64,000 nucleotides of DNA from Phallusia mammillata. Lineage: Eukaryota. Under the pieces are notes generated by a model. The model saw nothing but the letters and a program-made list of their open reading frames with translations, was not told where the DNA came from and did not search any database. Shown piece after piece: positions 1 to 63,199 of this stretch (position 1 is its first letter; every line of letters starts with the position of its first letter). The DNA lies in the NCBI GenBank assembly GCA_965637545.1, contig OZ281496.1:21886001-21950000 (forward strand), read 5' to 3'. The position numbers and the translations under genes were made by a program.

Positions 1-852
1 GCAATTCTTGAAGGCTAAATATACAACTTTATTTCTTAGAATATTTAGCCTTTAGTTCTTTCTTTAAGTTTGCTGACTACCCCAGTTTGTCTAGGTTTAT
101 ATCGGCGAAGCAAAGTATGCTTAATATAAATATCTGGTAATCGTGGCCCAAAACAGTTGTGAAGCTTAAATGGGATTATCTGCTGTGGGCAAAGATTGTT
201 TTTCGCAAACGCTAAAGAAATACCCTTAATTGGTATATTTTTTTCGCTTCGCTCACCGCTCGTTTTTGAAAGAAATATACTGTCATTGATGATCAAATCA
301 CATTTTTCTTATTTGTTAAACTAAGGGCAATAGTCATTTTCTAAAGTATAAGAACATGTTTATCGTTGCTTAACTAACGATAATCTAAACAGGGCCACAT
401 TGTTTTCTCTGAAAACCGGCGGGACCAATATAGGTATATTATGTCTTAAACTTGTAATTGTCAGTGTTGTAAAATAGTAACGCATAAAGTATGTAATTAT
501 CTAGTTTAAACTATGTTAATTTAGTTTAATAATATGTTTCATCAACGTTTCATTTCACTTTGTGCAAATACAACATTGATACTTACTAACGAATTTTCTT
601 TGACCCGTTTTCCACAGTTTTGAATGGTTTGTCCTAAACAAAAATAAATAAATAGATTCTTGCCTATATGTTCCACGAAGAAACAAACACGTGCTAGGCG
701 GGTCATAGTACTTTCGTACTAGATTAGTAGAAACAAAAAGCAACAGTCCATTTGGATCTTAAACATAACAATTAAAAAAAAAACAGATTTAGCTTACCAG
801 ATGTACATGAAGCGACAAATAAAATATAAGCCAGAAGCCGTATTGTTATCAT
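1..852 (-). CDS. G1: 5' portion of a serine protease homologue gene (continues beyond the left edge)
   Basis: Exons 798-852 (signal peptide MITIRLLAYILFVASCTS, GTAAG donor), 587-633 (GQTIQNCGKRVKENSL) and 1-14 (PSRIA.., start of the protease domain). Phases 1/0 match the G2 paralog. Confidence 0.8.
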
Positions 853-1397
853 TTTTGTTACACTTGGCACTTGAAGAACAAAATTACAGAATTTCTGTTG
901 CAAAACAAATACATATGTTTTTCTTTGTTTAATTTGATTTTTATCGACAGATCTCAAATCAAAAACATTAAAGACTGGCATGGTCTAATATTTTTTCTAA
1001 CCATTTCTCATAACTCTTTCAATGGTTTTTCATAATCCCTTTCATAAAACCATTTTTAAGGGCGTTTAAAGATAATATGACTTAAAAAAGGCAACCTCTT
1101 GGCGAATCTCGACATTTACAGATTTATTAAACTTGTTAAGCAGCTAACGAAATTAGATTTTACTTTAAAACGCAGACACTGCGCTTACTCTTAGAATTGT
1201 CCATCTTCAACTACTATGTTTTAATCTTTTTACAACAATCCTTATAAGCACCTTGTTTATAAATATACGGTTTACAAATAAAATTGGATTAAAACAGCCG
1301 AATAATTTTATTGCGTTCGTTTACAACTTCACTGGCGCTATTACCACACCCTATACCTACATCGTATACCAGATAGTGTAATCAGGTTATCGTAGGT

Positions 1398-1639: not shown

Positions 1640-1990
1640 TCCCATTGAATTGATTGTAGACATACTAGTCCAATGTTGTCAGTTTTCAAAAATATTGTGT
1701 TTTTAAAATTTTTGGTTTGTCATTCAAATGCGTCATTAAGCATTTAATATGGAAGCTAACACATCATCAGTGTTAAAGCAGGTTATAAAACGAAGAACCT
1801 GTATAAAACTAAAACAGTAGTTGTTTTCAAGTCACTTTTGTTTAATACAAACTACAACTGTCAGAATCCATTCGTCCGAAAGAATTGTGCCTCTGCAAAA
1901 CGTGTAAAACAAACCATTTGGACGAGTGACATAAATCATGGCTTGCCTGATTCATTCACCTCGTTTACCTCGTTGATTTTGGAAGGTTTA
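1640..1990 (-). pseudogene. Degenerate remnant of protease-homologue exons 1 and 3
   Basis: About 1845-1990 reads RGE*IRQAMIYVTRPNGLFYTFCRGTILSDEWILT, homologous to G2 exon 1, with a TGG>TGA change and a frameshift. About 1640-1690 resembles DNIGPVCLPS. Confidence 0.7.
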
Positions 1991-2610: not shown

Positions 2611-5600
2611 TCAGTGCAAAAACACGCCCACAAGTAAAGCTGGAAGCATCACCAGGACACCGATATTGGATCGCATGTTGCTAAAAGCACCTAAAAAATA
2701 AAGATCATTTCTTTAATTCACGTGTGTGTGACATAAGCGTCTTGGGCAATAAGTCGTAACATTACTTCATAGAAACGGCAAAAAGCAAAAATGTCAATCC
2801 AATTCTTAAGAAACGATTTAAAAACAACTTTAGTTCCACTTACCACCTGGTGCTGGAAATGTCAACCCAGTAACTGTAAAACACAGAAAATAGACGTCGT
2901 GTCAAACGATATACAGATAATATGGATGAATATGGGAATGTTTCTTACTGTCGTAAATCCATGAATAAACCTCAACGATCTCTGTAAAGTAGTCCGGTCC
3001 TTGGCCGCATGTCACTTTCCCAAAACTACTGATTCCATACTGGTACCAAGTCTGGTCTCCACGTTCGCAAACCAGAGGTCCGCCCCCGTCACCCTATACA
3101 ACCAACCCAAAGGCTTGATTTTGACTTTAAACAACGGAAATCATACAATGTTGCCTGCGGTTTGCTGTGGGCGAATCGGGGTTTGTTGCGTCCAACATAT
3201 AACACTATACAAACTTGAAAAAGAGTTCTTTTCTCTTTCAAAAAAAAGTTTTTTTCTAAAGTTATGTTGCTTTTGCGTTTTGTTTTAAAAAAGGCGACAC
3301 AATTGTAATGGAACAATAAAATTGGACTGTTTTGTAAAAACAGATAAGGGGCATAAATCGTTTCTTTTAATAACAGAAATATATATAAAAAATATAAAAA
3401 ATATAAAAAATATACTCAAAGATGACATTACACTTACAGAAATATATATTTCGTCTTAATAAACAGGCATCGTTAGTTTCTTATTCATATAGATTTATAT
3501 TTATGTATTTAAGAAACGATTTATGCTTATTATCTGTTTTTATAAAACAGTCCAATATAAAACTGATCAGAAGCAAGAATCTTTCTTTTATACATTGTAT
3601 TGTCTGCAGGAGGCGTTACATAGCAAAACTGTTTCAGCTAATGGAACAATATCGAAATAGCGGATAAAGGTTATCAGCAAATATTTGCGTCCCTATTCAA
3701 TTCGGTGTTCAAGGTTGCTAAGGCTAAAGTTGCATTATTGTGTGTAAATTGAGTTGCTAAAGGTAATCCTCTTACATCACATGTTGACTTTCCTGAAGCA
3801 GTGGCACACATTACAGATTGAGGCATCGTGCTTCCCATATGGTTGCTACAGTAACTGTCTCTTTGAACTTCTAGTTGTGCTTGTCGCAGACTGGTGGATA
3901 AATCATTGCTCGCTGCAACACAACTGAGCAATGTAGTTGTAGACCGCAGGATGTTTGCGAATACGAAATGATGACGTTTGTATGGGACTAAGCTCTTAAA
4001 TACACATCAAACTAGGAAGGAATTTGTTATTTTGATACGCATGCAAGAAATATAATCAAACATCCACCCATATTCTTCCTAGTAGCTTCTGGTTAAAAGA
4101 TGTCAAGTTTAAATGTGATAGTCGGTAATTGACAAATGACCTGCACTTACTGCTAGATATGTGGCCCCATCCAGTGGCGTAGCATTTCGTTCCGGGTTTA
4201 ACATTATGACTTTGACTTGATGGTAGACATACTGGTGCAATGTTGTCAGTAAACGTGATGCTATTTGTCAAGTATAGGAGACCAATATCATAGCCATCCT
4301 GACCATTACCACTGAAAAAGTGAGTATGTTTATAAGCACTTTCTTGTAAACACATTTTTTTGACATATTCTCACGTTGCTGCATGGTGCTTGTATTGATG
4401 TAATACTGTAATTGTTTGTTGTCCAGGTTCTATTGTGTTTTCTCCACTAATCTTTCCCACTGCTACCTCAATACTGCGAAATATTTTAAACAAATTTTTA
4501 GAAATTCGTTGTTGCTCCGAGATGCAACAAACTATTTATTGTAAATTTATTTTCTTACGTGTCACTTGTTTCGAAACAAGTTGCAGCGGTTAGTATCCAT
4601 CTGTCAGATAGAATTGTTCCACCACAGAACGTGTAAATTACGCCAAATGGACGTGTGGCTCGAACCATGGCTTGCCAAGGCCATTCTCCTCTCTGTGACG
4701 CTGTTCCACCAGCAATTCTTGAAGGCTAAATATATATATTAAGTATATGTATCGTTTTCTTGAAAGAACACTTAGAATTTTGTTCTTGCTTCAATACTAG
4801 ATTGACTAAATACCCTAATTTAACCAGGTTTATAAAGGCGAAGCAAAAGTGGCCTAATACAAAAATTTGTTAACCCAGTTGTTGAGCTAAGGGGCAGTAT
4901 TCAACCGAGAGTGTGAATTGTATGCTGTAATCAGATGACAAAATCTACAATAGGGAAAAGGAGGCATTATTTTACAACTTGATCTTGAAGCCAATTTGTG
5001 AATACATGAGAAATAAAAAACGCTTTAGTGCGGCCTCTCAAACAATGTTACTTACCAATGAATTTTCGTTGGTCCGCTTTCCACAAACAATTTCTCCTAA
5101 ACAATTTTTTGTTAGGGATATTGTTTTTCTTTTTTCAAAATATTGCATGTTTTTATTGAAATTGCCAAAATGCTACTTACTACATGCCGTAAACTGACTG
5201 GACCATCCATACTCCCGGCATGTAATTGTTGATGTTCCACTCAATTGAAAGCCAGGATCACAAGTATACGACACCTGTTCGTTCAATTGATATTTGTCTT
5301 TATCCGGGTTGATTTTTCCGTTTGGGGGAACAATGGGTCTGGAGCACACCGGATCTATTAAAACAACTCGAAATAATGTCGCTTCTTTATAGTCAGGTCT
5401 AAAAGTTTTGCAGAACGACATAGTATGTTTATTTGCAACTTTTACACCGTTTTAAATGACTTTTACAGTTTTCCTATTCGATATTACCTTTGCAACGCTG
5501 ACAGCGCCTAATCACATTGAGTAGACTCCGAAAATGTGGTTTGGACTGAAATTTGTTTAAAATTTGAACGATTTGTGTAACTTTTAACACCAACACCACT

Positions 5601-8600
5601 GATAGTTAATAGGATACAACAACGTGGTTCTACAAAAACGCGAAAATGTCTGTTGGTAATGCATCTACTCTCTTTAAACAGGGGTGCCCGCGGGCAAAAC
5701 GTTTTTTTAGAATCAGAACACAAATATACGGGATTTAAGGACATTGTGAGATTTTGTTGCGTCAGCACCATGTACACTTCCTTTTTTACCGGTGAATAAG
5801 GTTCCATGGAAAGCTTTTGCGTTAAGTGGTAGGTCGCCAAAACCCCAAAACGTAATCCAAACTATGGCGTTACATACGCAACACAATTTGTAAAAACAGC
5901 CGCGGGCCACGTGAAATGCCGCCGGGGCCGCATTTGGCCCGCGGGCCGCACTTTGGACACCCCTGCTTTAAAGTCATTAATTGGTACTGTAAACATGGGC
6001 GTCCGCAGGAAAAAATACAGGGGAGGGCAATACTATCGTCACATCGCCGTTCGATAAACGGTATTTCAGAACAAAAATCATCTGACAGTGATACTCATTC
6101 TTGCCAATCCCAATGTAGCAAAGTAGTGCAATAAACAGAATATTAACCATCACTGACGTATGTGGTAGATTGGCAAATACTTTTAACAGAAGTAGGACTT
6201 ACATACACAAACCTTATCAGATGTAGGCTAACAACAGACAAAGTGAAGCCTTCACTTCACTGTGAAGGTATCACATAATGACTGTTTTACACATCTATCA
6301 ATGACGTAATAATATGCTTGTTAGCGAGCTATTGTTAAGTAATAATGTTCGATTCATTTAATCTGTTGTAAAACCTCATCCTGTTCTGTTACAGTTACAG
6401 CTTGTATTCGGTGCGTTTAACAGGGTGGAGACCCACGACGTCTTCGGTTTACGTCCCAGGAAAACCGGCGGTTGCCGACCACTGCTGTAAAGGGTGCCCA
6501 AAATGCAGAAGTATGTAGTGCCTTTGTTCTGTGTACGTACTTGTTATAGCCGGGACATTTACACGGGTATTTGGTTATATCGCCGATTTAACGACTTTAT
6601 ATGAGTTGACAATGTAGTTTAAAAGTTTACAATGTATCTAGTTGACACGCAAATGTAGAAAAAAATCAGTCTTTATAAGACAGAAAATACGTGCACTTTG
6701 CTTACCTGGGTCTGGAAAAGTCAGTCCAGTGGCTGTAATAGAAGGAAAAAAAGTTACTCTTCATTGGTCCACTCTATTTGGAGGCATTATTACAATTTTT
6801 CTTACTGTCGTGAATCCATGAATAAACCTCAATGACATCTGTAAAGTAGTCTGGTCCGTAGCCGCATGTCGCCTTTCCGAAACTACTGATTCCATACTGA
6901 TACCAAGTCTGGTTTCCACGTTCACAAACCAAGGGGCCGCCGCCATCACCCTATGCAACAACGGCAGAAGTTTTTTTTTTATAATATTGCCATGTAAAAC
7001 TCTAACCCAAAACACCCGTGTTTTAAGTGTAACATATTGTTAGCTAGGTCAAGGGCGGGCAACCTACGGCCCATAAAACTTTCGAGCGACCCGTGACCGC
7101 ATTCTAACTGCTTTATTTATCTTGTCTGGGACCGCATTACAAATTCGTATTTTATTCTTCATCGGCCGAATGCCTTTTATGCGTAGTATCCTTCTTATAT
7201 ACCAAAGAGTTCTTTAACTAAACGCTGATAGTTATTACTAGGAAAGTAGAAATACGTATTGTTACGTACAAAAAACAAAACTATTGTGTGTGTGTGTGTG
7301 TGCTTTGGAACTGTGTAATAGAGTTGTGTTGAAGTTTATTGTGTTGCTCAATTGTTACTATCCTAAGTAACGCTGTCCAAGGTTAAAGTTTTAGCAAACA
7401 AGTTCTGTAGCTTATTTGATATGTGTACATATTCAAATCAAACAAATCTTTAAAGTTGAATTCGCCAATTCTTGATCGGTGATTGTATGAGGCTAGGTGC
7501 AAATGATTGACTTACTTCACATGTTGACTTTCCTGGGGCAGTCGCACATATCACACTGTCAGGCATTGTACTTTCCATTTGGCTTCTGCAGTAACTTTCG
7601 CTTTGAACTTCCATTTGTGCTTGTCGCAGGCTGGTCGATAATTCATCGCTACCTGTAAATAATGTTTTGAAATAGTGTTGTAATAAATAGAGTATTTTAA
7701 TATTGTGTTGATCAAACTGCGACGGTCGCTTTGTATCAGGTCATTGTGATTAATCTTTACCTTATATTTCAATTTTACTCATTGCTGAAACATTTTTTTG
7801 TCTTTACTAGCTGTTTCACTTGTAGATTTTTTGGCTTGTAGTTTAAAATAAGAAGGTGGTGGCAACGTTACTTTGATTTGTCAGGAATTAACTTTCAAAT
7901 CACTAAACAGAAAACAAATCACTTGCACTTACTACTTGATGTGTGGCCCCATCCAGTGGCGTAGCACTTTGTACCAGTGTCAACATTGTGGCTTTGACTT
8001 GATGGTAGACACACTGGCCCGATGTTGTCAGTAAACGTAATAGTACTCGTCAGGCGGAGAACTCCAACATCATAACCGTCCTCGATTGAGCCACTGGCAG
8101 AGATATTGTTTAAGAAGGCGAAAGGGCGCTTAAAGATTCTTTGTCTTTAAGTGCCTACTTGGTATTTTGTTAGGTTGTGTTATACTTTAAATTATACCGC
8201 AAAATTTTAATTAAAACCAAAAAAATACTTTTTACACGATTTTCATACCATTTTTTGGTGTTAGAAATGCTTTAGTTTCTAGATTCACTTTCATGAACTT
8301 CTCATTTACGCTTACGTGGCTAAATGATGTTTGTATTGCTCTGACACTGTAAAAATTTGTTGTCCAGGATCTACATTATTTTCTCCGTATATCTTTCCGA
8401 CCGTCACTCGAATGCTGTAAGGAAATTAACAAATCATTAGTGCTTATCCAAGAGTGAAATAAGTAAACCTGGTTAAAAAAGAAAAATATTTTCCTTGCCT
8501 ATCACTTGTTTGAAAACAGATAGCAGCTGTCAGTATCCATTTATCCGAAAGAATTGTTCCTCCACAGAATGTGTAGAACAAACCATTTGGACGAGTGGCA

Positions 8601-9186
8601 CGAATCATGGCTTGCCAAGGCCATTCACCTCGTTGTGATGGTGTTCCACCGGCAATCCTTGAAGGCTATATAGATAGCGCGTTCATTGTTAGTATATATT
8701 TGTTTCAGTCTCTGTTCTTTAGTGGGAGCTCTATACTGTTAGGGATGGTCAGATTACAGTTTTTTTGTAAAACACAGGGCGATAAATGAATTTCTCCCAC
8801 TTTCAAGAGGCTTGCTTTACTGAAGATAAGCTAAACAGTGCATGGCCACATTATTTACGCTATAATTAGACGAGCCAAAGTAGATAATAATTTACTTAAA
8901 TGATATGATAACTTACTAACGAATTTTCGTTAACCCGTTTTCCACAGTTTTCAATGGTTTCTCCTGAACAAAAAAATAATAAATTTGTAACCGCAATTGT
9001 TCTTCGAGTAATAAATATGCTATGTGGGATTTGTAACACCCACTTTGAAATAAATTTGTGTAAGTATTACACACAATAGTTAATTTGTAAATTAAACACA
9101 ATAATGGAAGTCAAAATCAGTTTTGCCTTACCAGATATACAGGAGGCGACGCATAAAATGAAGGTCAGAAGGCGTATTGTTGACAT
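2611..9186 (-). CDS. G2: GPI-anchored two-domain serine pseudoprotease, SP-PSP-CCP-PSP-GPI (623 aa if spliced as one gene)
   Basis: Exons: 9132-9186 (SP), 8917-8963, 8499-8665 (PSRIAGG..TAAIC, GC donor), 8316-8414, 7933-8093, 7516-7652, 6806-6950 (GDGGGP), 6706-6732 linker, 5181-5354 (CCP), 5056-5096, 4559-4725 (TAATC), 4375-4473, 4151-4311, 3776-3912, 2949-3093 (GDGGGP), 2844-2873, 2611-2690 (hydrophobic tail ..NIGVLVMLPALLVGVFLH*). Total 1872 nt, frame open. It could instead be two genes (see finding at 6105). Confidence 0.8.
5679..5965. mobile_element. hAT-type MITE
   Basis: Termini CAGGGGTG..CACCCCTG; CTTTAAA on both flanks (imperfect 8-bp TSD). Confidence 0.7.
7285..7302. repeat. (TG)n microsatellite
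   Basis: Directly visible TG run in a G2 intron. Confidence 0.8.
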
Positions 9187-11640: not shown

Positions 11641-14596
11641 TCAGTGCAGAAAGATCCCCATAAATTGCGCTGCTACCATTATCAGGACACCATTGTTTTG
11701 CAAGCACCTGAAAAATAATGATCATCTCTTTAAATTCTGTGCAATCACTTATCTCTTGTCCCCATCTCAAAGCTCTGGTTTTTTAACTGCCCAAATCTGT
11801 TTGTGCATTTCGCATTTATTGCGTGAAAAGAAACCTAGGATTTTTATGAACACTGTTAAGGATCTTTAAAATTTAAAGCACATCGTGGCATAAGTTATGT
11901 GGAAACACTGACATAAACAGGTGACTGAACATACTTTGAGATGGGCTACATAAAACACAGCACGATAAAACTGCTTACAGACAAAACTGGTTAATGACTT
12001 TCCAGATTATTGCATATGCATTTAATTGCAAAGAAATCGTTAATCCCATACCGTAGTCTAGTAAAATCGTCATCGCATATCGCTTATATTAAAAGTTTGA
12101 ACGAAATATGCGATTTTGCATTGCCAGGGAAGTGCGAATGAGCACTTCTTTTAACAACGCAAAGTCCGTCTAACAGCGTAAAAACGCTTGGTAAGTGGTT
12201 GGTTATGTGATTCACCAGTTTATGCTTCAGAAATATATTTCTCTTACTTACCACTTGGGGCAGGAAAAGTCAAACCAGTCACTGTAAAAGACAAAATATT
12301 TACTTTGTATCAAAATATTTTTAGATAATATGGATATGTTTCTTACCATCGTGGATCCATGAATAAACCTCAATGACATCTGTAAAGTAGTCCGGTCCTT
12401 TGCCGCATAAAGTAGTCCGGTCCTTTGCCGCATGTCTCTATTGTAAAACTAATGATTCCATACTGATACCAAGTCTGATTTCCACGTTCACAAACCAACG
12501 GCCCACCGCCGTCACCCTATATAACAATCGAAAAGTTTGTTTTCGGCTTGCAACGACTCAAAATTACCTTAAGACATGTAATAACCCGCAAAACAGCGAA
12601 ATCAAGCACTTTTACCAAGCAAATAAGAGTTTGTTGCGTCTACAATAAAACGCCTTGCAAATATAGTGAAATTGCTTGCTTTGCGAAAGAAAAACACTAG
12701 AGCAAGCAAGCCGGAAATAATTAGGCAGCGTTAAAACGGTTTCAGGCACAAAATGTGACGAACTTATTCGATTAGATCTATTCTAAGGTAACAGTGCTGA
12801 ATTTGCCTGATTGTGTGTAAATTAAGTTGCTAAAGGTAATTCACTTACCACACATATATCGACTTTCCTGAAGCAGTGGCACACATCACACTTTCAGGCA
12901 TCGTGCTTGCCAATCGGTTGCGACAATAACTGTCGCTTTGAACTTCTAGTTGTGCTTGTCGCAAACTGGGCGAATAATCATCGGTCGCTGCAACACAATT
13001 AGACACACATGCATGTAACTGCAGGTGGCATGATGTTAGTGTAAACGCTGGCTAACTTTGTAAATATTAAACACGTCTCAATTTGTGTATTTAAAGCTAC
13101 ACAAGGGACAAAAGTTTGCCAATAAAAACAACATATTATCGAAAATAATAGTTAGTTGTAAACAAATCATTTGCTCTTACTACTTGATGGGTGGCCCCAT
13201 CCAGTGGCGTAGCACATGGTTCCGGTTTCAACATTGTGACTTTGAATTGATGGTAGACATACTGGTCCGACGTTGTCATTAAACGTGATGCTATTTTTAA
13301 GTAAAGAAGACCAACGTCATAGCCATCTTGCCACGAGCCACTGTATATAATGAGAATGTAAAAAGGTTGTTTTTTGTTTACACATTTTCATGACATAGGC
13401 TCACGTGGCTGCATAGTGCCAGTATTGATTTAACACTTCAAATTTTTGCTGTCCAGGATCTATTGTATTTTTTCCATAGATCTTTCCCACCGTCACTTCG
13501 ATGCTGCCACATGTTAAAAAGCAAAATTCATGTAATTTGTGTTTGCTCCGAGATGCAATATATGTTGTACATTTAGTTTTCTTACGTATCACTCAATTGA
13601 AAACAAGATGCAGCTGTTAAAATCCATCTGTCCGAAAGAATTGTTTCCCCACAGAATATGTAAATTACGCCAAGTGGGTGATTAGCGTGAACCATGGCTT
13701 GCCAAGGCCATTCACCGCGTTGTGACGCTGTTCCACCAGCAATTCTTGAAGGCTGAATATACAACACTTCTCACAACATTTAGGTTTTTGTTCTTGCTTT
13801 AAGTTTGCTGACTACCCCAATTTGCCCAGGTTTATATCGGCGATGCAAAATATCCTTAATATAAAAGTCTGTTATTCGTGGCCCAACTCAGTTGCGGAGC
13901 TAAAATGAGGATTATACTGTGTTTCACCGGCTATTCGCAAAGACTAAACAAATAGTACCTTAATTGCTATTAAATTTTGCCTCGCTGGATGATCAAAGTA
14001 TGTTTTTGCGTGTTTGTTAAAACGTAGGGCATTTGTCAATTTCTCGTACTTTGCATAAGTCGAGGTATAAGAACATGTTTATCTCGTTGCATAACTAACG
14101 ATAAGCTAAACAGTGTTGGACAACATTGTTTACCCCGAAACCAGGCTGGATTAAAGTAGATGATAGTTTATGTCCTAAGTTTAATTGCCAAGTGTTGTAC
14201 AAAAGTAACGAATTTGTAAAAAATATGTAACTATCTTTTCCAAAGTATGTTAATATCTTAATGTGTATCATCAACGTTTAAGTTTATTCTATGCAAATAA
14301 AACATTGATACTTACTAACGAACTTTCTTTGACTCGTTTCCCACAGTTTTCAATGGTTTGCATATACATATGTATATATTTTTGCCTATGTTCCACGAAG
14401 GAGTATAAATGTGTAATGCAGGCATATAATGCTTACTTTCGAAATAGATTGGTAGAAACTACAAGCAATATTCCATTCGGATTTTAAATAAAATCATTCG
14501 GATTTTAAAAACAATTAAATAAAAAAACAGTTTTAACTTACCAGATATACAAGAGGCGGCAAATAAAATATAGACCAGATGGGGTATTGTAACCAT
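11641..14596 (-). pseudogene. G3: single-domain SP-PSP-GPI pseudogene
   Basis: Exons: 14542-14596 (SP); about 14316-14360 (AG acceptor lost); 13586-13752 (TAASC); 13405-13503; 13181-13340 (160 vs 161 nt, frameshift); 12849-12987 (139 vs 137 nt); 12347-12516 (25-nt tandem duplication 12384-12433); 12252-12281; 11641-11707 (67 vs 80 nt). Confidence 0.85.
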
Positions 14597-15412
14597 TTTT
14601 GTTACACTTGTCATTTAAAGAACAAAATTTCTGAATTTCTGTTGCAAAACATATACATATGTTTTTCTTTGTTTAATTTGACTTTTTATTATCAACAGAT
14701 CCCAAGTCAAAAACATTTAACGCTGACATGGTCTAATATGCTTTTCTAACCTTTCCTCATAACACTTCTAATGGCGTCTTTCACAATCCGGATTGAAAAA
14801 TTGTTATGAACTGTTTTTAAGGAAGTTCAGTGATAATATGATTAAAGAAAAAACAAGTCCAATGGCAACATCTTGGGAAATCTCGACATTTACAAATCTA
14901 TTAAACTCGACTAACTGCTTCACACCAACCTATCTCTGTCTTTGTAACTTATTACCGAACCCTATACCTACACCGTATACCAGGAAAAGTGTAATTAGGT
15001 CATGGTAGGTAAATATTGGCTTAATTGGTGAGACTAATCGACTCCGAAAAGTTTTATGTTGATTAGCCACTGATGCGTGACGGAGTGACATTCTCGTTTT
15101 ATCGACACAAATCGTATACTTCCTGCAGCGCCCAACTGTGATATTTCATATTGCTTATTGTACAAATACCGAACTGTCGTGCGGTTGTGTTTATCAGCTA
15201 CTACTGTGATTTACGGATAAAACAGGTTGTTGATAAATGGTTCGAGTCTTGTGACCACAAATAGCCTTCTTTTTTGGTTTATTATGCGCCTTAGAGACCA
15301 ATGTATGTGTATATTCTTGCTTGATAAACAAAAAAAAACACCATAAAATAACACTTAATTTTGAAAGTATATTATGCACATAGTATTTCAAGCCATATTC
15401 CATTTCGCATGA

Positions 15413-24400: not shown

Positions 24401-24512
24401 CGGTCAAAAAAGTTTGAGAACCGCTGCATTAAAAGTATAGGTATGAAATTTTAATCTTACCTACTAAAACTGTTGTTGAGAAAACGACAAGCCAGCTCCA
24501 TGTATTGTACAT
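15413..24512 (-). CDS. G4: three-domain poly-pseudoprotease, SP-PSP-CCP-PSP-2xCCP-PSP-EGF-GPI (1046 aa)
   Basis: Exons: 24461-24512, 23729-23775, 23415-23578 (TSAGC), 23026-23121, 22791-22960, 22576-22730, 22355-22499 (GDSGGP), 22263-22292, 21699-21875 (CCP), 21415-21455, 20815-20978 (TAAGC), 20211-20303, 19967-20136, 19757-19911, 19531-19675 (GDGGGP), 19437-19466, 18977-19162 and 18324-18500 (CCP), 18060-18100, 17620-17783 (TGADC), 17463-17555, 17038-17192, 16610-16770, 15934-16078 (GDWGGP), 15645-15674, 15413-15567 (EGF plus hydrophobic tail). Total 3141 nt, open, all GT-AG. Confidence 0.85.
23830..24426. mobile_element. hAT (Buster-like) MITE
   Basis: TIR CAGTGGTTCTCAAA / TTTGAGAACCGCTG; exact 8-bp TSD CATTAAAA. 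Confidence 0.9.
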
Positions 24513-27012: not shown

Positions 27013-27021
27013 CCAACTACA

Positions 27022-36645: not shown

Positions 36646-36770
36646 AAGGGCAGGAACTTGGCCAAATGGTCCGGCGCGCCTGACCCATATACAGACATAA
36701 AAAAACCTGATCGGGATTCGTCCCCGGGAGAGACCTGGGTTCGAACCCCGTGAAAAAAAAAAATATATAT
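36646..36770 (+). mobile_element. tRNA-derived SINE inserted in a coding exon
   Basis: A-box TGGCCAAATGG (36659-36669), B-box GGTTCGAACCC (36738-36748), poly-A/(TA)n tail; second copy at 53993-54102. Confidence 0.85.
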
Positions 36771-37782: not shown

Positions 37783-38318
37783 CAGGGGTGTGCAACCCGC
37801 GGCCGGCGGGCCACAATCCGGCCCGCCAAGCCGTTTAGTGTGGCCCTCGAAAACACTCCGATTCAGAGCGAGTAAAAATGCACATTTTAGCAAAAAAATC
37901 CCCGCTAGTTTTCGGTAAATCTCCTAAGTTGCAATACGTAACAAGAATAAGCTAAACCAGTGCATTTTATTTAATTCACCCAGACCACTGGTCTTCTATT
38001 CGCACTTGGTGCTTATTGCGTATATATACCGAATATGACGTAATATACCCCTTTGTCTAGTAAACAATTACTTTGTTGTGAAGGCAGTGTTGCGACGAAA
38101 CTTAGTTGCACCTAACATTTTAAATTGATTTTAAACGCAAAATAAAACAAAACGCAGGGGTGTGGAAATAGTATCGACATGATATTATAATGTAAGCCGC
38201 ACCAACATTAGGGTAAAAAGTACGTGTAAATACGGTACATGAAAAAAATTGTGTGGCCCTCGCTTGATGTCCGAAATTGGTAATATGGCCCACCGAAGAA
38301 AAAGGTTGCACACCCCTG
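37783..38318. mobile_element. hAT (Buster-like) MITE
   Basis: TIR CAGGGGTGTGCAACC; exact TSD GTTTAGAC. Confidence 0.92.
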
Positions 38319-52326: not shown

Positions 52327-55300
52327 TTACAACAGCAAATTTAACACAAGAAAGGTCGTCAAGATTAAGAGTATAAACGGAATCCGCATGGGTTCGCTGT
52401 TGGAGCATGTGTAGCTGCCGATGGTGTTGGTGCATCGTTGGTTGTTCGGACAAGGGTTTGGTGTTTGTTCGCATTCGTTGACATCTGTGTGTAAAAAAGA
52501 AAAAATGAGTAAAACAATGTTTACTATAAATATATGTACATATAAACACTTGTAGAACACATTTGATTAATCGACTAAAGAAAAGACTCAATTAATCGTA
52601 TTTGCAACAACATAGTGTATACATCCAATACCAGGAACCAAAAATATGAGTTGCTTTAACATGTAAATACTTTTGACAATGCATATTGTTTCATAGGTTT
52701 CCCAAATTCTTGCACAAAAGGTTGTTCAAACCACGTTAATAGAAACAGTTTTTAAATTTGTAAACTTACCAGTGAATGAATCGAAGTCAATGCTTGAAGC
52801 TGAAAGAAAATATGATCATTAACTCACTTATGTTATCATTCCCTAACCTTATTCCTATCAGGTTTAACTACAAATTAAATTTGCAGTTTTCGTTAACTAG
52901 TTTTTTTTTTGCGCATAGATTCCTTGTGTCCAGACAATAATACAGTAGATAGGTTGTTTTAAAATAAAAAAAGTTTTGTTACTTGTCTTAATCCACCAAA
53001 ATAACTCAGCGACGTCTGTAAAGAAAGTTGATCCTTGTCCACAAACACTGCTTCCAAAACTCCTTACACCGTATTGGTACCATGTATTGTTTCCCACGTT
53101 ACACATCAATGGTCCACCAAAATCGCCCTGTAAAATAAATCCTATTAAATAGACACTAAAATTGTGCCGTAACGTGTCATTTGTGATTTAAGACATACTT
53201 TAAACCAGGGGTACACAGTCATTTCGCTGACGGCCGAATTGCAGATTCTTATCTCACCAACGGCCCCAATTTCTTACTTGTTTTTGTTATAAAATTGCTG
53301 ATGTAAAAATAGGTTTATATCATGTATATACCATCTAATGCAGGGGTTCCCAACCTTTTTACGATCCCGTACCACTTGGACGCTCTGCACTGCCACACGT
53401 ACCACCATAGAGAAAATGTGTTCTATAGTGCTCTATGCCACTTCTTGCAGAACAACTAATTTGTTCGAATTATATTTCATTCAACACTAGCTTAAGCTAC
53501 AAAACAGTAGATGATATCTATCAAGAGCAATCATTTGACATAATTAACGCCCACTGTGCCACAGCGTTGTTCGGCTTTTCATAGCAACTATGCTTTTTGT
53601 TGAGAATTGACATGACCTGTATTTTGAAGATCGTAATGATACGAAACAACAGGAATAGTTACGTAACAATGACAATAGGCCTGGGGAATGTTTTTTTTGC
53701 AAACAAAACCAGATAAACAAAATATAAAGTTGCAAATCGAGGTTTTTGTGAACAGAACAGAAGCTACTCGCGTACCACCTGAAAACCCTTCGCGTACCAC
53801 TAGTGGTACGCGTACCACAGGTTGGGAACCCCTGATCTAATGGCACCTGAAAAGCCCAGAGGACTTCTAACTAGATGCTATAAACAGTCGCGCGATCAGT
53901 CTTTACCGCTATGCTAAACATGTTCACGGCCGCACAAACTTGTCTCCGCGGCCCCAGGTTGTGCACCTCTGCGTGAAATTGTAACTTAATAAGAGCAGGA
54001 ACTTGGCCTAATGGTCCGACACGCCTGACCCATATACAGACATAAAAACTTTGATCGGAATTCGTCCCCGGAAGCGTCCTAGGTTCGAACCCCGTGAAAA
54101 AATGTAAGCTTGACTAAAAGTGTTTAAAGTTAAGTTCACATATGCATTAACAAATGAAAAATTTTGAAAATAAAACCTTAAAAATAATTTCCATACCACA
54201 CAAGTATCTTTGTTGTTTGCTTGAGCACACATAATATTTGAGGGCATAGGAGCTCCTTGATTCACACCCTGAAAATTAAAATACTCTGCTGCGCAAAATA
54301 GTTTGCTTTTAATCTGAAGCTCAACTTGTTGAAGTGTGTGGGAGAACGGGCCACCATCTACAAAAGTACAATTTATTTAAACAACGCATAAATGATAAAA
54401 CTTAACACAAGTTTCTGTCTTACCCTGATTTTTTCCCCATCCAGCAAAGTAGCATTTTGTTTCGGGAGGTAGCTTATAACTTATTCCTGGTGGTAGACAT
54501 ACGGGACGCACGCGTTCATTAAAAGTTATGCTTGAACTCAGCTTTAAAAGACCAATATTATTTCCCAACAAAGCAGATCTATGCAAAAAAAATGTAAAAA
54601 TAAATTAGAATAAACTCCAACCTATCATGCATTTAAATTCCTAGTAAAAAAGAATCGTTCTGTTGCTAATACTACGTAGAGTGTTAATAACTTTTTGGTC
54701 CTCTGTAACAAGAATTGATCCCAAACTTTATGTTCAAGTGACTAAAATGCCATTGATTGCGCACACTTTTATTATTGTTTTTGTCTTGTTTGTTACATAA
54801 TAAATTGCCTTTTAATCATTCCAACGCGAGGTGATCTTACGAAAGTAAACATTTAATTATCCAGTATGTTGTTGTGGGAATACACTTCCACAAGAAATAA
54901 ATTACCTTGGTGTTGTTACTTACAGCTTTTGTTTGGCTTAGCTACAAATATAGTTTCAGATAAATATATTTAGCTTGCGCTGAGTGCTCGAGAAAATTGC
55001 AAAGGGATTGTTATGGCAAAGTGTGATAGACAAATTTAAATAGTTACCTGAAACTGGTGAGATAAAGTTTATTGTGAACAGCAAGTATTTGTCCTTTTGA
55101 GTCAGAATCCACGATCTCAAGTGAGCCGACATAAACTGACAGCCTAAATTCATTAGTATTAATTTTGCTACAAACTGCTAATGGTTATTATTTACGCACT
55201 TGGCAGTTTCTTGGATACAGCTGGCTGCAGTCATTACCCACTTATCTGAGATTATAGTTCCTCCGCATAAAAATGTGTATTGTGTTTGGTAATATCCACT

Positions 55301-58300
55301 TGTAGTTTTAATGACCTGTGCCATCCATGGCCATGCACCTTCTACTGATGTTGTTCCGCCCTGGATTCTTGCGTTCTGTTAACAAGCGTTAAAATATGTT
55401 TTAGAATAGACTTTTTCTGCTTTTGCTCTCTTAACTAAATATAAATTATACCACTGCGTATGAACTTGAACGTGTTCCACAGCGAGGCGGTATTTCTGCA
55501 ATGAAAAGTACAATTGAAAACCTTTAATAGTTGCGTTTCTTTGAACTAAGAGAATCACCACTGTTACTAAGTTAAGTTTATTAAAATTTTCAAAATAACG
55601 TATTTTAGGACTTAACTATGAAACGGCAACAGTACCGGAGAGGGGACTTGAAATAATAAGAAATATCCTAGTAAACGAATTAACACTCATAAACACTGCT
55701 TTCCAAATTGTGCTGAAATAAAACTAAACATTTTGCTTTTCCGAAAAAACGCGTCTAAAACTGGGCTGGCGTCTCGGAAAATAGTACGGATGTAATAAAA
55801 TAAAAATATCTTAAAAACACGAACAAAGAAAGTTAAATTTGGTAACTTGACAATTGAAAACTATATACTCCACTGAAATTTATTCTATACAAGACTGCTA
55901 GCAAGCCTGATATATGAAGTATAAGAAAGCTACAAACTAAAAGGAATGTTAAAACTTACCGCATGAAGGTACATTAGGAGACCATCCATTACTTTCACAT
56001 GTTGGTTGTGATGTGTTTCCAAACAGCACCAACCCGTTTGAACATGCAATTTGGATTTTTTCATTGTACGCGTAACTTTCTTTGAGTGGAGAAATTGTTT
56101 CGTTTTTGTGCACGACTGGTTGTTGGCAAGTTATCGCTGCAATCATATAAGAAACTGTATTTCAAAGTATTTAACACACCGTCAGTCAATTTTTGCTTCA
56201 GAACTATCTGTGTAATTTCTACATATGCCCCATGACTACTTTTGCACAGATATGTCACATAAGACTATTTAAATTTTACTTTAGGGATAAAATAAATTGC
56301 CTCTGTTTTCTCTATTAGTAAAACTATAAATTGAAAACAATGAAAAGTGATTGATGTTAGTACTTTTGATTCATAAATTAAACCCTTTGTTATAACGGTG
56401 TAAACCATTTGTAACATATTGGTGTTACCTTCACAAGTTGGGTCCTTGCCAGACCACGCTCCATCTCCAGTGTAATTGGATATAAGACATGTTAGGCTTT
56501 TCTGACCCACTACCTTGTAACCACTGTAACAGCTGAAAGTGACCGTACTGTTCAAGATGTATGTGTTCTGATACGGCGATATAGATCCACGCAATGGATT
56601 AAATGGCCTCGAGCAACTGATGACTAAACATGAAAAGACTATCATTGGGACACTACAAAAAAACGCTTATGTAGACAAATAAAATGTAAGGGCAAATAGC
56701 AGCAAAACATGCATCAGTTTGGGCATGTGATATGTCCATTAAAATCCTCGTACATTTTTTTAGGTAATGACAAAAGTGGATTTGTGAAAATAAACTTTTG
56801 CCAGGAAACAGCATCTCCTTATACAGTGGTATTTTTTGTCGGCCGGTCGATGTGCAGGTTTAATGTCTGCTTTTGCAGCGAATATAATTAAAAATTGGTT
56901 AGTGTTATTTCTAAACGTCGAATTAATTTAACCCTTCGACTTTAGCAACTTGAAAAAATGTTCAAATAGAAGGTCGAACTAAAAAACGAACTGTTCCTGT
57001 TGTTATCAATGCTTTTGTTGCTTTTAAGAACTTTGTGTTTTATATTACATTATTATCAACAATTAGTAACAAAATTCCTGGTGTTCTGACACCAGTTTTA
57101 TGATCTCGTTCCAATTTACCTCGACAATCTGAAAAAGTACTTGACCAGCCACCCGGCCACTTGCATGTTAGGTTTCTTAAATATGCGGGGGTTATGTAAT
57201 GGCCCTTGTTGCATGCCATTGAAACGTTTGCTCCGAGTGAGTATTCTTCTTGGATTGGCCAGAAATATCCGTTTCGTGGTCCGGTCGGCGAGCCACAAGT
57301 AAAAACTATGAAAAAAATATGACTGTGAATACTTTTTTTGATTGGTTAAGTTTATTGTGGTCAGATATTTTGGTGGTGTCTTTAAGATTGCTGTTGTACA
57401 CTAAATTCTTGTCCAAAACTTTGCTACTATTGTTGATTTGTTTCTGATGTTGAAACGACCTTTGAGTTCAACAGCCCACTAGAAGTTTTTAACTGTAAAT
57501 AGTTACGTTCCAAGTTTAAACTTTGAAAGCGTAGTTTAAAGCCGAAATGACGTCATGTTTTTAATGATGACATCATAAAAAAAATGCTTTTAAATTTGTT
57601 TTAAATTTTGTACACAACAACATTTCCAGAGAAAGTTATGGGCTATCTCTTATCACATTTTCTAGAAAAGTCATAAAGTACCACAAACGCAGAAATTTAC
57701 GAAAAAGAATACTGCAGTATAGGTTAAATGCATATGAATATATGATTTAGTTGCACGGTGGATGATTTACACAACGTCTAGTCTTACGAAGGTTTCGTTT
57801 TTGTAAGTTTCCAAAATGAACTAGGTGTTGGAATTCGCAATACAATGCTTTACCTTTGCAAGTTGGTGGAGTTTCTGACCATCCATTTAGGGTACAAGTG
57901 AGTCGAATTGGTCCATCAAGCTTGTAGCCGTAATTGCAATAGAAATCGACATATGTATTTAAGCCCGTGTATGTACTGCTTAAGCGTCCATTGCTCGGTG
58001 GGCTGAGAGCAGAACATCTAAACCCTGGAATAAACAGTTACGGTAACTTTAAAAGCTAGAAACTAGGTAGTTTGTTTTGTAAGAAAGTTTTAAAGGGGGC
58101 AAAACAGTAAAGTAGCGATTGGATACCAGATACAACGAAAGTAGATAGTTAAAAAATATAATGGAGCTGTAAACCGCAGCTAACAGTGTTTGTATGGTTC
58201 TAAAGTAGACGGTGGTGGGATTCAGACGGTTCGCACGGGTTCTATAGTACCGTCTTAAGAAATCTTATGAGATCAGCAAACCGGTGAGCATTACTGGTTA

Positions 58301-61300
58301 CTGTCATTGGACTTTTTCTAACAGAACTGGCTGAAAAATATGAGTTTTGTTATAGAACCGGCTGACAATAAGTTTGAATACCACCACTGACGTAGAGGTA
58401 TAACTAAAGACTAAAATCGTGACAAGTTGGACCAAAAAGCTTCTTTAACTTTGTGGAAAGATAAAAAAGAAGAGACATTATTCAACTCAAAGTAATAAAC
58501 TTACTTGGGCATGATGGGGCGCTATGTGACCAAATCGCTTTTCCGGCGGATAAAACGCAAGTGCTTGATGAACTTCCTTGCAGCGTGTATCCGGTGTCGC
58601 ATGCGAAAGTGACTACAGCATTCACCACGTATCCTCTTTGGTAGTTTGGTGTTATTGTACCATAACTTAAATATAGTCTCGAGCATTTAATAACTGTAAA
58701 AATACAGAAAAATCAACAGGTTTAACCCAGATGCAAAAAAGCTTCAGAATAACACGAATATATGCGTGTTTTAATTTATTATGTCTGTTTGAAAAGGTCT
58801 ATAATAATAAACAACAAACGCCCAAATGAAAATCCATTTTTAAATGTAAAAAATATCTATTTAACACTTTTTTTGGAAAAGTTATTCAATTTGAAGGTAA
58901 ATTCCTACTGTTTGGTTGTTGAAAATGGAGTCCAGTTTCTGAAAAACAAAAAACGTGTAACAACTACACTGCCAGTCTTGCCGCTTCAAAGTAATTTACT
59001 AAAATTATCCTTAACTGTTTGTCTTCTTAGCCCTATACTCCTAGTCTAAACAATGAGTTAACAAAGATGCTTTTTGTGTACGCACTTGAGCTAATCCAAC
59101 TACAGACTTCTGGAATATTCGTGAAAAACGATGGACCGTCCCCACATTTTGAGCTTCCAAAGCTTCGTAAACCAAACTGGAACCATTTATCATCACCAAC
59201 GTTGCACAGTAATGGGCCACCGCTGTCACCCTAAACAATTAAACGCAATGGCGATGAAATGTTAAATTTGTTGTGGGTTATGGGACTTAAGAAAAACTTA
59301 AAGTAAAAGTCTATTTTTTGGAGGTCGCATGTAAAGTCAATTTGCCAGTAGTGTCGAAGTCTTACATTTTTAACTCTCGTTCAAATCCTTGCGATTATGT
59401 CTCCAATTCATCAGTTATGTCCTTCCTTATATAGCGAGTTTTAACACAAGCTGTTACGTAATTAATGGTTGATATTTTAAGCAAAATCTATTATGAAAAG
59501 TATAACATTTTGACAAATCTGTTATGAAAAGTATAACATTTTGAGCTATTCTTAACTTTCTACTATAATCTTACCCTACAAGTGTCCGTATTGTTGGTGT
59601 GGGCACATGTTAATGAATTAGGTAGACCAGAAAACGAAGCTCCTTGAAAAACTCGGTAGTTATTATAGCAGTATGTTGTAGGTTTGATCTCCAACTCTAC
59701 TTGCTGCAGATTATCCGACAAAGCAGTGGAGTTTTCTTGAAACAGTAAAAACGCAAAAGCCTACTTTAGAAGATAATGTAACCAGGGTGCCGTAATTTGA
59801 CCAGTAATTCTCAAACTGTGCGAAACATTTATTGTTGTAAGCATGACAACGCTAACAGCAAAAATAGACTTGATCAACGTAGTCCCGAGTTGTAAACGGG
59901 CCTGAAGCCGTTTAGACCTAAAGGTTTTATAGACATATACATGAAAGCCTTTTTGAGCATATGCATTAAAGCCTAAGGAAAGACAATAACAGACAGTTGG
60001 TCATGAAAAATGCGTTTAAGGCTGTTCAAAATTGGGTCAGGTCCAGCAAGTGGCTATTTAGGTAGCTAAATTTAATACTGACACAGATCGTAAAGTCGGA
60101 CCCAAGTCAAGCCCGTTAATTTGGAGAAACCTAAGCCCGAACCCGGCCCGAAAAGTCCTGGCCTTCTTACAACTCTGACGTAGACAGCGCAAAAACATCA
60201 TCATTCAGCAATACCAGAGTCACTCATCTCAACAAAGTTGCAAATTGATTTTATCCAACATTGTTTTTCTGTTGTTTTTAAGGCATACAAGGTGTAGGCT
60301 ACCCCGAAAATTTAGTTTGTACACCGTAGCCTATCTGTAGCTTAAAATATTGGGTTCAAGAGGGGTTTTTTCTGCTGAAAACAAATACAGTTTATGTCGA
60401 CCTTCAGATATGTCACGGAAAATGTACTAAATATGAATAAACTGTTACTGCCAGGCATAATATATCAACAATTTTTTAGCTATTCCAGCAGTCTTTATTA
60501 TAATATGCCGGTTTCGATGTCCCGTACGAGACACCTTCACCAGGGTAACCCAACAGGGAAGGGCTAAAAACTGCGGAAAGAGTTTAAAAATTGTTGATGT
60601 ACTAAATATAATTGCAATAAAACTGCATTTAATACTCGGGGAGTTCAACTTACTTTTAAGTCCCCAACCGGCAGTAATGCACTTTGACTCCGGTGGCATT
60701 TCGTATGATGATCTTCGTGGAATACATATGGGGCCGACAACATCATTAAAAGTAATTCTTGAAGTTAGTTCCAGCAGACCCGCGTCATTTCCCAATAAAA
60801 TACTCCTGCAAATTGAGTTAATTCGTTTAACGGATATTCTTGAAAACAATTTTAATGTTAGATTTTTATTTAATTTGTCAAGCAACTCAAAATTACTGAA
60901 ACCGTTATTCAAAAACTACTTTAAAAGTTTCTTACGTGTAACTTGTGTGTCTGTATTTTTCCTTTACTGACATAACCTGTTCTGTTGGAGAAGGTACAGA
61001 TAAAGTACTTCTACCAACATAAACCTTGAACCTGCAAGTTTTATTTACACGCATTAAGTGAATAAGTCCTAAAAACTACGAAACACGGTAAACATATAGT
61101 TGGACATTCTTAAACTGTTTCCGGCAATACATGCTAGCTGTGGTAATATAAACCCTTGTTGTATCGTCTAGAACAGGGGTTCTTAACCAGGGGTACACGC
61201 ACCCCCAAGGGGTGCGAGAACTGTTCCTAGGGGGTGCGGGGATGCTGAATCATTAAGGTTGGTTTGGTCTTTTCTATTTAAGCAATTACAGAAGGGGGAG

Positions 61301-63199
61301 CGAAAATTGGTTGGTGATTTGAAAGGGGTGCAGCAAGGAAAAAAGGTTAAGAACCACTGGTCTAGAATATCTGTCTTGTGCTTAATCATGGTCCATGTCA
61401 TGATAACATGTAACACGAAATCAGAAAAGGCCCCCATCTCGTGGTAAAACTATATTTATGAGGGGTAGTTTCATGTACATTATTTATTGTCGGAAAAATA
61501 ACTTTGATATAACATATGAGCAATGTGCGCTTTGGACGCAACAATTCTACCAATTTGCTATTGGGCAACTATACTCAAAAATAATCTGTAACCAAACTTA
61601 CACATCGACAAAATTGAAGCATTCAGCCCCGGTAAGAATCCATCTGTCTGATATTATACTTCCCCCACACACGAACGCCGTGCTGTTGTCGGCTTCAACT
61701 TTGGCAACAATTGCCATCCATGGCCATGTTCCGTTCTCCGCTGTCGTACCGCCGTAAATACGACCGGTCTAAACAATCATAAGTAACATCAAAGTCGTTT
61801 TCTAGAATGGTCTTGCGGTTGGACACAAAAAAGAACTAAACACTATCTATTATTAATTCATTATTACACGCTTTAAAATAAATTTTTCATTTGCATAACA
61901 TGCAACAGTTTTTTTTTTTTGTAAATTGTTACGTTTTTATTTTGGCACCATCCCATGACGTTATAACGCATTTATATATTGTTTCTCTGTAACGAATTGT
62001 CGAGGAGAGTGGCCCAACGCGGCTACGAAACCGTCAGGTGAAGTTGTTGTTGAGCGGTGGTTGTGTTGCGACCGTAAATCTGCGCTGCTTGCCCCTTTTA
62101 TCGTTTTACTCTTTCAATATTTTAATACAAATTAATTTGGGTAACAACAGAACCAAAAAAATGCGTTACATAGTTGCAAATTTACTTGTTGACTATTATT
62201 GCAAAGCATCAGAGTCTTACCGGTTTGCTTCTTGTTCTTGTCCATTGTTTACCACAGTCGGTTAACGCGGTGGCTGAAAAACAATTTTATGTCGTTGTTG
62301 TTGTAAACTATACAGATTATGTTTGCAACGTTTTATGCGTGCAATGTTTATTTCATAGTATCAACAAAAACATTATTCTTCAATTTGTCATTTTGCAAGC
62401 TTCATGCAAGAGTTTCGTTCACCACATTTTTCCATTTTTAAAAACTTTGGTAATTGCTTCCAAAAAGAATATATTCACAGGAATTGTAACGTAACGTAAC
62501 ACAAATATTGTCGTAATGCCAAACATATTAGTACATGTTCTAAACTCGAGTTTCGATGTGAAGTAGTTTTTATTGATTTGATCAAAATCGTGCGGAAAGT
62601 TACTATAGCTACGCTAAGCTATATAGTGAATGTTAGTATCGATACCCGTATAATCCAATAGCGAAATACTTTTACTTTTGTAACTTGTTAAATGCGAAAA
62701 TACATACACACAATAGAATATACAAACATAACACTCAACTTTACCCGGCCTTACTTGAACAAGTTGGAGTGACAGTACTCCACCCGCTATCGGTGCATGT
62801 TTTCGTTTTACTACCATGAAGTACGTATCTGTCTTCGCAAGTAAAAGTGATAACCGATCCCACAGAATAAGTTGATAGATCCGGGCTCACGGATCCACGA
62901 TATATCGTTGGTCGGTAACATGTTGAGTCTTTAAAAAGACAGTTCGTTAGTCCGCTTACGATGCGTTGGTGGAGATGTAGGTATATTGCATTAGTACAAT
63001 GCCAACCCTGTTTTATTAGGTCTACCTGTTTCAGAGGCTACTTAATGTTACCACTTTTTTGCGTGTCAGAACAGAACGTCATTAAAATCTAAATATAATG
63101 AGTTAAAAATATGTTTGTTTTTCTATGCTTACCTGCAAATTTCGCTAAAGCAATTAAACATAAACAAAGTCCAACATTGTGTTTCCATCCACTGTACAT
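52327..63199 (-). CDS. G9: SP-CCP-PSP-5xCCP-PSP-EGF-GPI poly-pseudoprotease (965 aa)
   Basis: Exons: 63133-63199, 62755-62928 (CCP), 62221-62273, 61602-61768 (TGAEC), 60936-61031, 60654-60805, 59575-59735, 59086-59230 (GDSGGP), 58505-58693, 57854-58024, 57120-57305, 56429-56623 and 55960-56136 (5 CCP), 55452-55495, 55200-55375 (TAASC), 55048-55143, 54424-54578, 54197-54357, 52983-53127 (GDFGGP), 52770-52799, 52327-52484 (EGF plus ..RIPFILLILTTFLVLNLLL*). Total 2898 nt, open. Confidence 0.88.
53206..53971. mobile_element. Older hAT-type MITE hosting a nested insertion
   Basis: Imperfect termini CAGGGGTACACAGTC / GGTTGTGCACCTCTG; TSD not recognisable. Confidence 0.55.
53341..53834. mobile_element. 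Nested hAT (Buster-like) MITE
   Basis: TIR CAGGGGTTCCCAACC; exact TSD ATCTAATG. Confidence 0.92.
53993..54102 (+). mobile_element. tRNA-derived SINE, intronic copy
   Basis: A-box TGGCCTAATGG (54004-54014), B-box GGTTCGAACCC (54082-54092), A tail; homologous to 36646-36770. Confidence 0.85.
58210..58389. mobile_element. hAT-type MITE
   Basis: Termini CGGTGGTGGGATTCA / TGAATACCACCACTG; TSD degenerate. Confidence 0.65.
59885..60177. mobile_element. hAT-type MITE, CAGAGTTG family
   Basis: CCGAGTTGTAAA..TTACAACTCTG; TSD ACGTAGTC / ACGTAGAC (7 of 8). Confidence 0.8.
61174..61359. mobile_element. hAT (Buster-like) MITE
   Basis: TIR CAGGGGTTCTTAACC / GGTTAAGAACCACTG; exact TSD GTCTAGAA. Confidence 0.92.

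Follow-up and report, generated by a model that had tools for sequence, protein, structure and literature searches.

Proteases that have lost catalysis are among the commonest pseudoenzymes, and their mode of action is known for only a few; in HGF and in the serine protease homologues (SPHs) of insects, function depends on cleavage at the former activation site. The closest described designs come from beetles, where the polypeptidases pSerP448, pSerP900, pSerP333, pSerP382, pSerP614 and pSerPH608 of Tenebrio molitor, together with SP14 of Tribolium, have S1A domains separated by Sushi modules, most of the domains after the first being dead and pSerPH608 being wholly so (PMC11172050). The dead domains of these chains were proposed by the authors as binding modules, and an SPH with a prostasin-like hydrophobic end is mentioned in the same paper (PMC11172050). 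Polyserases also mix active and dead S1A domains in one chain (PMC1435904). Here we describe an array of nine paralogous genes, G1 to G9, encoding dead S1A domains in series with Sushi, i.e., complement control protein (CCP), modules, in a 64,000-nucleotide (nt) stretch of the Phallusia mammillata genome (assembly GCA_965637545.1, contig OZ281496.1, forward-strand positions 21,886,001 to 21,950,000; this whole stretch is referred to as the window, and all coordinates are positions within it). Taking the evidence together, we consider it fairly probable that the array is a lineage-specific tandem family of functional genes, the products of which would be secreted-pathway glycoproteins built as chains of two or three S1A domains with one to five CCP modules in between and probably carrying a glycosylphosphatidylinositol (GPI) anchor.

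The window is gap-free and AT-rich (34-40% G+C). The paralogs occupy it co-oriented, as a preliminary description of this DNA had noted, all nine on the minus strand, five of them (G2, G4, G6, G8 and G9) being intact and the other four (G7, G5, G3 and G1) broken or partial. Exon families were delimited as clusters of stop-free minus-strand segments, and Pfam, run on individual exons, returned matches to Trypsin, Sushi and EGF_CA. The rebuilt models agree with that description in the same five complete genes, open over 17-26 exons, and, with G7 included, in the 12 protease-fold domains (two in each of G2, G6, G8 and G9, three in G4 and one in G7) and the 15 CCP exons (one, three, two, three and six in G2, G4, G6, G8 and G9, respectively), arranged in an order that differs in each gene. 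In the following, protease domains are numbered P1 to P3 from the N-terminus of each protein, and bracketed letters give the residues at positions 57, 102 and 195. G9 (52327..63199, minus strand; 22 exons, 974 amino acids, all introns GT-AG, domains from Pfam on exons) encodes a signal peptide, one CCP, a dead protease domain P1 (E57/D102/S195), five CCPs, a dead P2 (S57/N102/F195), a truncated calcium-binding EGF domain (cbEGF) and a hydrophobic tail. G8 (42347..50647, minus strand; 19 exons, 790 amino acids) leads from the signal peptide through a dead P1 (S57/D102/G195), three CCPs and a dead P2 (N57/D102/W195) to cbEGF and tail, and G6 (28079..33762, minus strand; 18 exons, 718 amino acids) from the signal peptide through a dead P1 (G57/D102/G195), two CCPs and a dead P2 (D57/D102/W195) to the same ending. 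The 26 exons of G4 (15413..24512, minus strand; 1040 amino acids) specify a signal peptide, a dead P1 (G57/D102/S195), one CCP, a dead P2 (G57/D102/G195), two CCPs, a dead P3 (D57/Y102/W195), cbEGF and tail. The model of G2 (2611..9186, minus strand; 17 exons, 621 amino acids) has a signal peptide, a dead P1 (I57/D102/G195), one CCP, a dead P2 (T57/D102/G195) and a short hydrophobic tail, with no EGF. All five models are open: their 102 exons contain zero internal stops and zero frameshifts, and the 97 introns are GT-AG throughout except for one GC donor, at position 8499 in exon A of G2. The AG and GT dinucleotides fall at the same alignment column and in the same phase in nearly every paralog copy. 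A conserved Gln/Glu-Val codon pair at exon C was considered as an acceptor and rejected, as it is not a splice site.

Each protease module is spread over seven exons, with phases 1-0-2-2-1-0-1-1 at the successive boundaries, in the order pro-linker (with one cysteine), A, A2, B, C, D and a micro-exon, where the activation site and the surroundings of His57 fall in exon A, Asp102 in exon B and the Ser195 region in exon D. The CCP modules are encoded one per exon, and all 15 exons align and have phase 1-1, so that modules could shuffle without breaking the reading frame; Sushi (PF00084) was matched by Pfam on three of them, and they have the four cysteines and conserved tryptophan that mark the module. 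The micro-exon, of 27-30 nt and flanked by strong splice sites in all modules, follows every protease domain and encodes TGLxFxAPx, a motif that is kept between subfamilies only ~45% identical elsewhere and for which we know of no counterpart among other S1A proteins. It was first revealed by an RNA contig in G4 (15645..15674, minus strand); further copies on the same strand are located at 58909-58938, 52770-52799, 47806-47835, 42808-42837, 32271-32300, 28306-28335, 22263-22292, 19437-19466, 6706-6732 and 2844-2873. Many introns of G4 and G6 are just 55-65 nt long (e.g., 32720-32774 and 19912-19966), which is typical of compact tunicate genomes and, along with the best matches in Ciona, agrees with an ascidian origin, and two introns of G8 (46769-47089 and 49706-49899) share a repeat with a glycine/phenylalanine-rich translation (GFGSGFGL...).

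The Trypsin profile PF00089 is matched above its gathering score by exon A, exon B and exon D alike, and a profile search of the PDB returned S1A proteins exclusively, generic ones, with azurocidin (heparin-binding protein) among the matches. Residue numbers are our own mapping onto chymotrypsin by sequence, and alignment-based counts take in 11 of the 12 domains. His57 is replaced in every one of the 12, and the full catalytic triad is present in none; given the loss of His57 throughout, peptide-bond hydrolysis by the normal mechanism is impossible, and by the standard His57 criterion the domains are indeed catalytically dead, as had been proposed. Asp102 is kept in nine of the 11 aligned domains. 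The residue preceding the activation cleavage site is Arg in 12/12 domains and the one following it Ile or Val (I/V-x-G-G) in 11, G8-P2 reading R-S-I-G-G. A pro-linker cysteine, which pairs with Cys122, is found in all 12, all five disulfide pairs (42-58, 136-201, 168-182, 191-220 and 1-122) are kept in 11/11 aligned domains, as is Asp194, and Gly193 is kept everywhere except in G6-P2. In the S1 pocket, Asp189 is kept in nine of the 11 (those of G4-G9), the domains of G2 having Ser189 together with Asp226 by our numbering.

Every gene begins with a signal-peptide exon of 17-22 residues ending at the same phase-1 donor. At the other end, the proteins of the intact genes finish in 15-17 hydrophobic residues that run directly into the stop codon with no cytoplasmic residue, just as the earlier reading of the tails had it, and S, N, D or A residues lie 6-10 positions before the hydrophobic stretch. 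The combination of a signal peptide and a short C-terminal hydrophobic end without cytoplasmic residues is the classical shape of a GPI signal, as in prostasin and testisin, and a GPI anchor thus probably tethers the intact-gene proteins to the cell surface. The final exon of G4-G9 specifies a truncated cbEGF (DVNEC...C...C.N...GSY.C), absent from the preliminary description, then a few small or polar residues and the hydrophobic tail. The cbEGF matches EGF_CA (PF07645) above the cut-off over positions 1-32 of 43 only, corresponding to the two-disulfide N-terminal half, with 4-5 cysteines in place of six and the C-terminal sub-domain missing, and its first Asp (in DVNEC) arises solely through splicing to the micro-exon. 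In G4 this exon (15413..15567, minus strand) comprises the N-terminal half of the cbEGF, the small-residue stretch, 17 hydrophobic residues and the stop; its paralogs, on the same strand, are at 52327-52484, 42347-42507, 34588-34766, 28079-28233 and 25457-25635. G2, which has no EGF, ends in SNMRSN-IGVLVMLPALLVGVFLH. Between 8 and 14 N-glycosylation sequons were counted in each of G4-G9.

The intact genes are under purifying selection. Recent domain pairs have ratios of nonsynonymous to synonymous substitutions (dN/dS) of 0.17-0.42, with bootstrap 95% limits of 0.11-0.63, the CCP exons have 0.2-0.7, and no 30-codon window with dN > dS was found. Between G4 and G6 the introns are ~61% identical (distance ~0.55), and the exons show a dS of 0.33-0.43 and a dN of 0.13. 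Two DNA runs (X1 and X2) and two RNA runs were compared with G6 as reads and as contigs. Contigs of X1 and X2, up to 2.1 kb long, cover G6 at ~99.8% identity, which excludes an assembly artefact. From the RNA run X11, a contig runs from exon D through a 30-nt piece into the last exon, and its letters that differ from G6 all equal G4, which identifies it as a correctly spliced transcript of G4. A lack of transcripts from the intact genes, which the preliminary description had named as grounds for abandoning its proposal, is therefore not what we observe for G4, the expression of which is low.

From these features we infer GPI anchoring, cleavage, ligand binding and a biological process, and we postulate that an Arg-specific convertase would cut before each S1A domain, that the cleaved pieces would stay disulfide-linked to the anchored C-terminal module, and that the new N-terminus would insert and order the pocket, such that a ligand would be bound and not cleaved. 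Armed by cleavage, the proteins could then act as binding modules or decoys through which an extracellular protease system is regulated or sensed. Several points weigh against such a family of functional, surface-anchored binding proteins. Ser195 is kept in two of the 12 domains (G9-P1 and G4-P1), making residual or substrate-assisted activity conceivable; residue 226, again by our numbering, is S, T or D, not Gly, which could narrow the S1 pocket; transcript support consists of one 184-nt contig at depth 3.6, from one gene and one of the two RNA runs; and the RNA runs share at most 0.02 of words with the window in all those listed. The GPI anchor is predicted from the shape of the sequence, and for cleavage and ligand binding the argument is one of analogy with haptoglobin, HGF, insect SPH cofactors and the dead domains of polyserases, the last of these being a proposed role. 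Were the residual serines functional, G9-P1 and G4-P1 would cleave with substrate assistance or another general base while the dead domains regulate, and it is true that both domains contain the full set of Ser195, Asp102, Gly193, Asp194 and Asp189 and that polyserases and beetle polypeptidases combine active with dead domains (PMC1435904; PMC11172050). However, His57 is absent from both, and a single transition separates the AGT serine codon of G4-P1 from the glycine codon (GGT/GGA) found in its three closest relatives, so that this serine is probably secondary and not a retained catalytic residue; we hold residual enzymes to be very unlikely. The thin RNA support, along with the four of nine copies that are broken or partial, could also be taken to mean that the array is decaying DNA in which no copy makes a functional protein. 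We regard this as extremely improbable, given 102 exons without a stop or frameshift, conserved splice sites, dN/dS far below 1 while introns have diverged to ~61% identity, and the existence of a correctly spliced transcript. With respect to topology, the hydrophobic C-terminus might instead be a short transmembrane anchor, or be removed to yield secreted products like beetle polypeptidases and polyserase-2, as the hydrophobic stretches are short and contain polar T, S, H and N and the closest described architecture is secreted (PMC11172050). Yet a signal peptide, a 15-17-residue tail and upstream small residues make up the GPI-signal shape of prostasin and testisin, and the shape of the tail is conserved across genes ~45% identical, the EGF-less G2 included, which leaves this alternative doubtful, though worth keeping in mind.

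The preliminary description saw in the array a variable recognition system, that is, allorecognition, gamete or immune receptors or decoys in which allelic or paralog variability carries specificity. The tandem arrangement, the decayed copies, a domain order different in each gene, the predicted surface display, paralog subfamilies that are only 40-50% identical and an expression that is rare and non-housekeeping would all suit such a role, and the region of G7 shares just 0.67-0.80 of words with other DNA runs. This low share, however, concerns a pseudogene and a repeat-rich spacer. G6 differs by ~0.2% among three individuals (the window, X1 and X2; one gene, in assembled contigs that drop rare variants). 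The high allelic diversity of allorecognition and self-sterility loci of the FuHC/fester, Themis and vCRL1 type was thus not seen at G6 in these three individuals. Contigs 90-95% alike to G6 were considered as divergent alleles and rejected, their letters being equal to those of the paralog G4. Moreover, all recent pairs have a dN/dS below 1, a value that is not surpassed in any 30-codon stretch, the window holds only five intact genes, and a review of ascidian fertilisation and gamete recognition lists no such family (PMC9265791). What stands of the recognition proposal is the predicted surface display, in keeping with the signal peptides and GPI-type tails; the variability finds no support in the ~0.2% at G6 and the dN/dS of 0.17-0.42, and we judge a variable recognition system to be rather unlikely. 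A related possibility, which we rate as unlikely too, is that the proteins are surface protease sensors, in which a dead domain would be a bait with a conserved Arg-Ile bond that a foreign or partner protease cuts, rendering the domain binding-competent on its GPI scaffold. If that were true, the cutting protease would come from a pathogen, a sperm or a neighbouring colony, the paralogs would differ in specificity through their domain orders, and the principle of recognition would be one that, to our knowledge, has not been described in chordates.

The history of the family can be traced in part from a tree of its domains, in which those of the window form one clade apart from the trypsin-like domains of Ciona (support 100/100). 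G8, G6 and G4 have N-terminal domains that cluster with one another (92/93), the last domain of G6 pairs with that of G4, and the two domains of G2 are each other's sisters, a grouping which suggests that the two-protease design is older than most of the gene duplications; G4 has evidently gained an internal protease-plus-CCP unit. The loss of His57 is common to all domains and the replacing residue varies, as would be expected if the histidine was lost early and the position then drifted. Array growth by tandem duplication, internal duplication of modules and decay of copies is supported by these comparisons, and the birth-and-death evolution and domain shuffling suggested earlier find support in the decayed G5, G7 and G3 and in the extra protease and CCP unit of G4.

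Among the broken copies, G7 (34588..39435, minus strand) has a single protease domain (D57/D102/W195), followed by cbEGF and tail, and its exon C is interrupted. Blastn within the window placed here a tRNA-SINE-like (short interspersed nuclear element) insertion of ~125 nt with a GGTTCGAACCC box (36646..36770, minus strand), which by comparison with exon C of G6-P2 is 125 nt long and shifts the frame, making G7 a probable pseudogene. A second copy of the GGTTCGAACCC-box element, 88% identical, lies in an intron of G9 (53991-54102), and neither copy was called as a tRNA by ARAGORN. G5 (25457..27048, minus strand) is a 3' fragment in which the end of exon C is followed by exon D, the micro-exon and the cbEGF/tail exon, and it was recently copied from the 3' half of G7: together with the spacer upstream of G4 (24719-27006) it has 89-93% DNA identity to 33846-36611, i.e., the 3' half of G7 and the spacer upstream of G6. 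The adjacent gene bodies of G4 and G6, introns included, are just 75-79% identical, so that either two duplications of different age or a gene conversion limited to the spacer is indicated. G3 (12324..14614, minus strand), delineated by tblastn with G2, is a pseudogene with one protease domain, the exons B and D of which are frameshifted (a short tandem duplication), and G1 (1..852, minus strand) is represented by its 5' end, with a signal-peptide exon at 798-852 and a pro-linker exon at about 545-600, the remainder lying past the window edge; the 5' regions of G1 and G3 have 73% DNA identity. Two isolated relics were also located, one of a protease exon A in the interval from G2 to G1 (1835..1951, minus strand) and one of an exon B (10249-10374). 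A repeat of ~750 nt with 82% identity occurs at 9510-10248 and 27018-27779, and also at about 15081-15206; its copies abut the exon-B relic in one place and the 5' break of the G5 fragment in another, and it may be a mobile element involved in rearrangements. Its longest open reading frame (ORF) had no Pfam match. In the window as a whole, no long bacterial-style ORFs and no tRNA genes were found, and the eight longest ORFs of the plus strand were without a Pfam match.

Relatives were sought by searching 1.84 billion representative proteins with a profile built from the aligned D exons, in libraries that evidently lack the proteome of the source organism. The search gave 1420 matches and no close relative, with a best single-domain score of 61 bits, the best-scoring domains being of the active GDSGGP type. 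Multi-trypsin proteins of fish, amphibians and insects headed the list, no match combined Sushi, Trypsin and a tail, and the annotated tunicates Ciona, Styela and Clavelina offered no close counterpart among the matches. The Styela Sushi-trypsin protein P0030 was considered as a relative and rejected as being of a different kind. Over whole domains the best identities, 33-37%, were to trypsin-like proteins of Ciona and vertebrates, and an exon-sized query against homologous proteins gave no match in a search that its length window makes nearly uninformative. The claim that the architecture is unprecedented accordingly holds in part, since the core design of active or dead S1A domains with Sushi modules is known from Tenebrio, and we found no precedent for the predicted whole, i.e., all domains dead, CCPs, a GPI-type tail and, where present, a truncated cbEGF. 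A family that retains the zymogen-activation machinery, has lost catalysis, is under purifying selection and is predicted to form multi-domain chains at the surface offers a clean natural test case for the reuse of activation cleavage as a binding switch, and it is a candidate component of ascidian complement-like or gamete-surface protease systems.

Each of the known systems shares some features with the array. Prostasin (PRSS8) and testisin (PRSS21) are GPI-anchored S1A proteases whose S1A domain follows a signal peptide and precedes a short hydrophobic C-terminal extension, which the GPI anchor replaces; G2 ends in exactly this manner. They are, however, single-domain active enzymes with neither CCP nor EGF. 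Haptoglobin and PAMR1 have a CCP before a dead S1A domain, haptoglobin being cut at Arg-Ile and held together by a disulfide and PAMR1 having EGF domains; unlike the proteins of the array, they are secreted and have one protease domain, and in PAMR1 EGF and CUB are N-terminal. The protease domain of the haptoglobin/C1r type is, in addition, typically encoded by a single exon and is not known to have the Cys42-Cys58 loop, whereas here the domain is split into seven exons and both Cys42 and Cys58 are present, which places the family outside that type. HGF/MSP, the clip-SPH cofactors and azurocidin have likewise lost the triad and kept the fold, but these are soluble, with one protease-like domain and kringle or clip accessory domains. 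The polyserases (TMPRSS9, PRSS36 and PRSS53) and ovochymases resemble the family in having S1A domains in tandem, part of which are inactive and all of which come with an activation site and a disulfide tether of their own (PMC1435904). They differ in having at least one active domain, no CCP between domains and either an N-terminal transmembrane anchor or a secreted form, and the best alignments with TMPRSS9-like proteins are 25-33% identical, so that the array does not belong to the polyserases or ovochymases. The likeness to the beetle polypeptidases is in design, with two to three S1A domains per chain, Sushi between them and an activation site before each domain, and homology to them is probably at the domain level only. 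The beetle proteins are secreted, lack EGF and a hydrophobic tail and in most cases have one domain still active, they are cleaved at Leu|Ile and not at Arg|Ile as here, and no tandem array has been reported for them. As a deuterostome counterpart to the Sushi-SPH polypeptidases of beetles, the Phallusia family suggests that this design arose more than once; what is new in it is the all-dead, CCP-spaced chain with a GPI-type tail, which in G4-G9 follows a truncated cbEGF, and its encoding in a tandem array.

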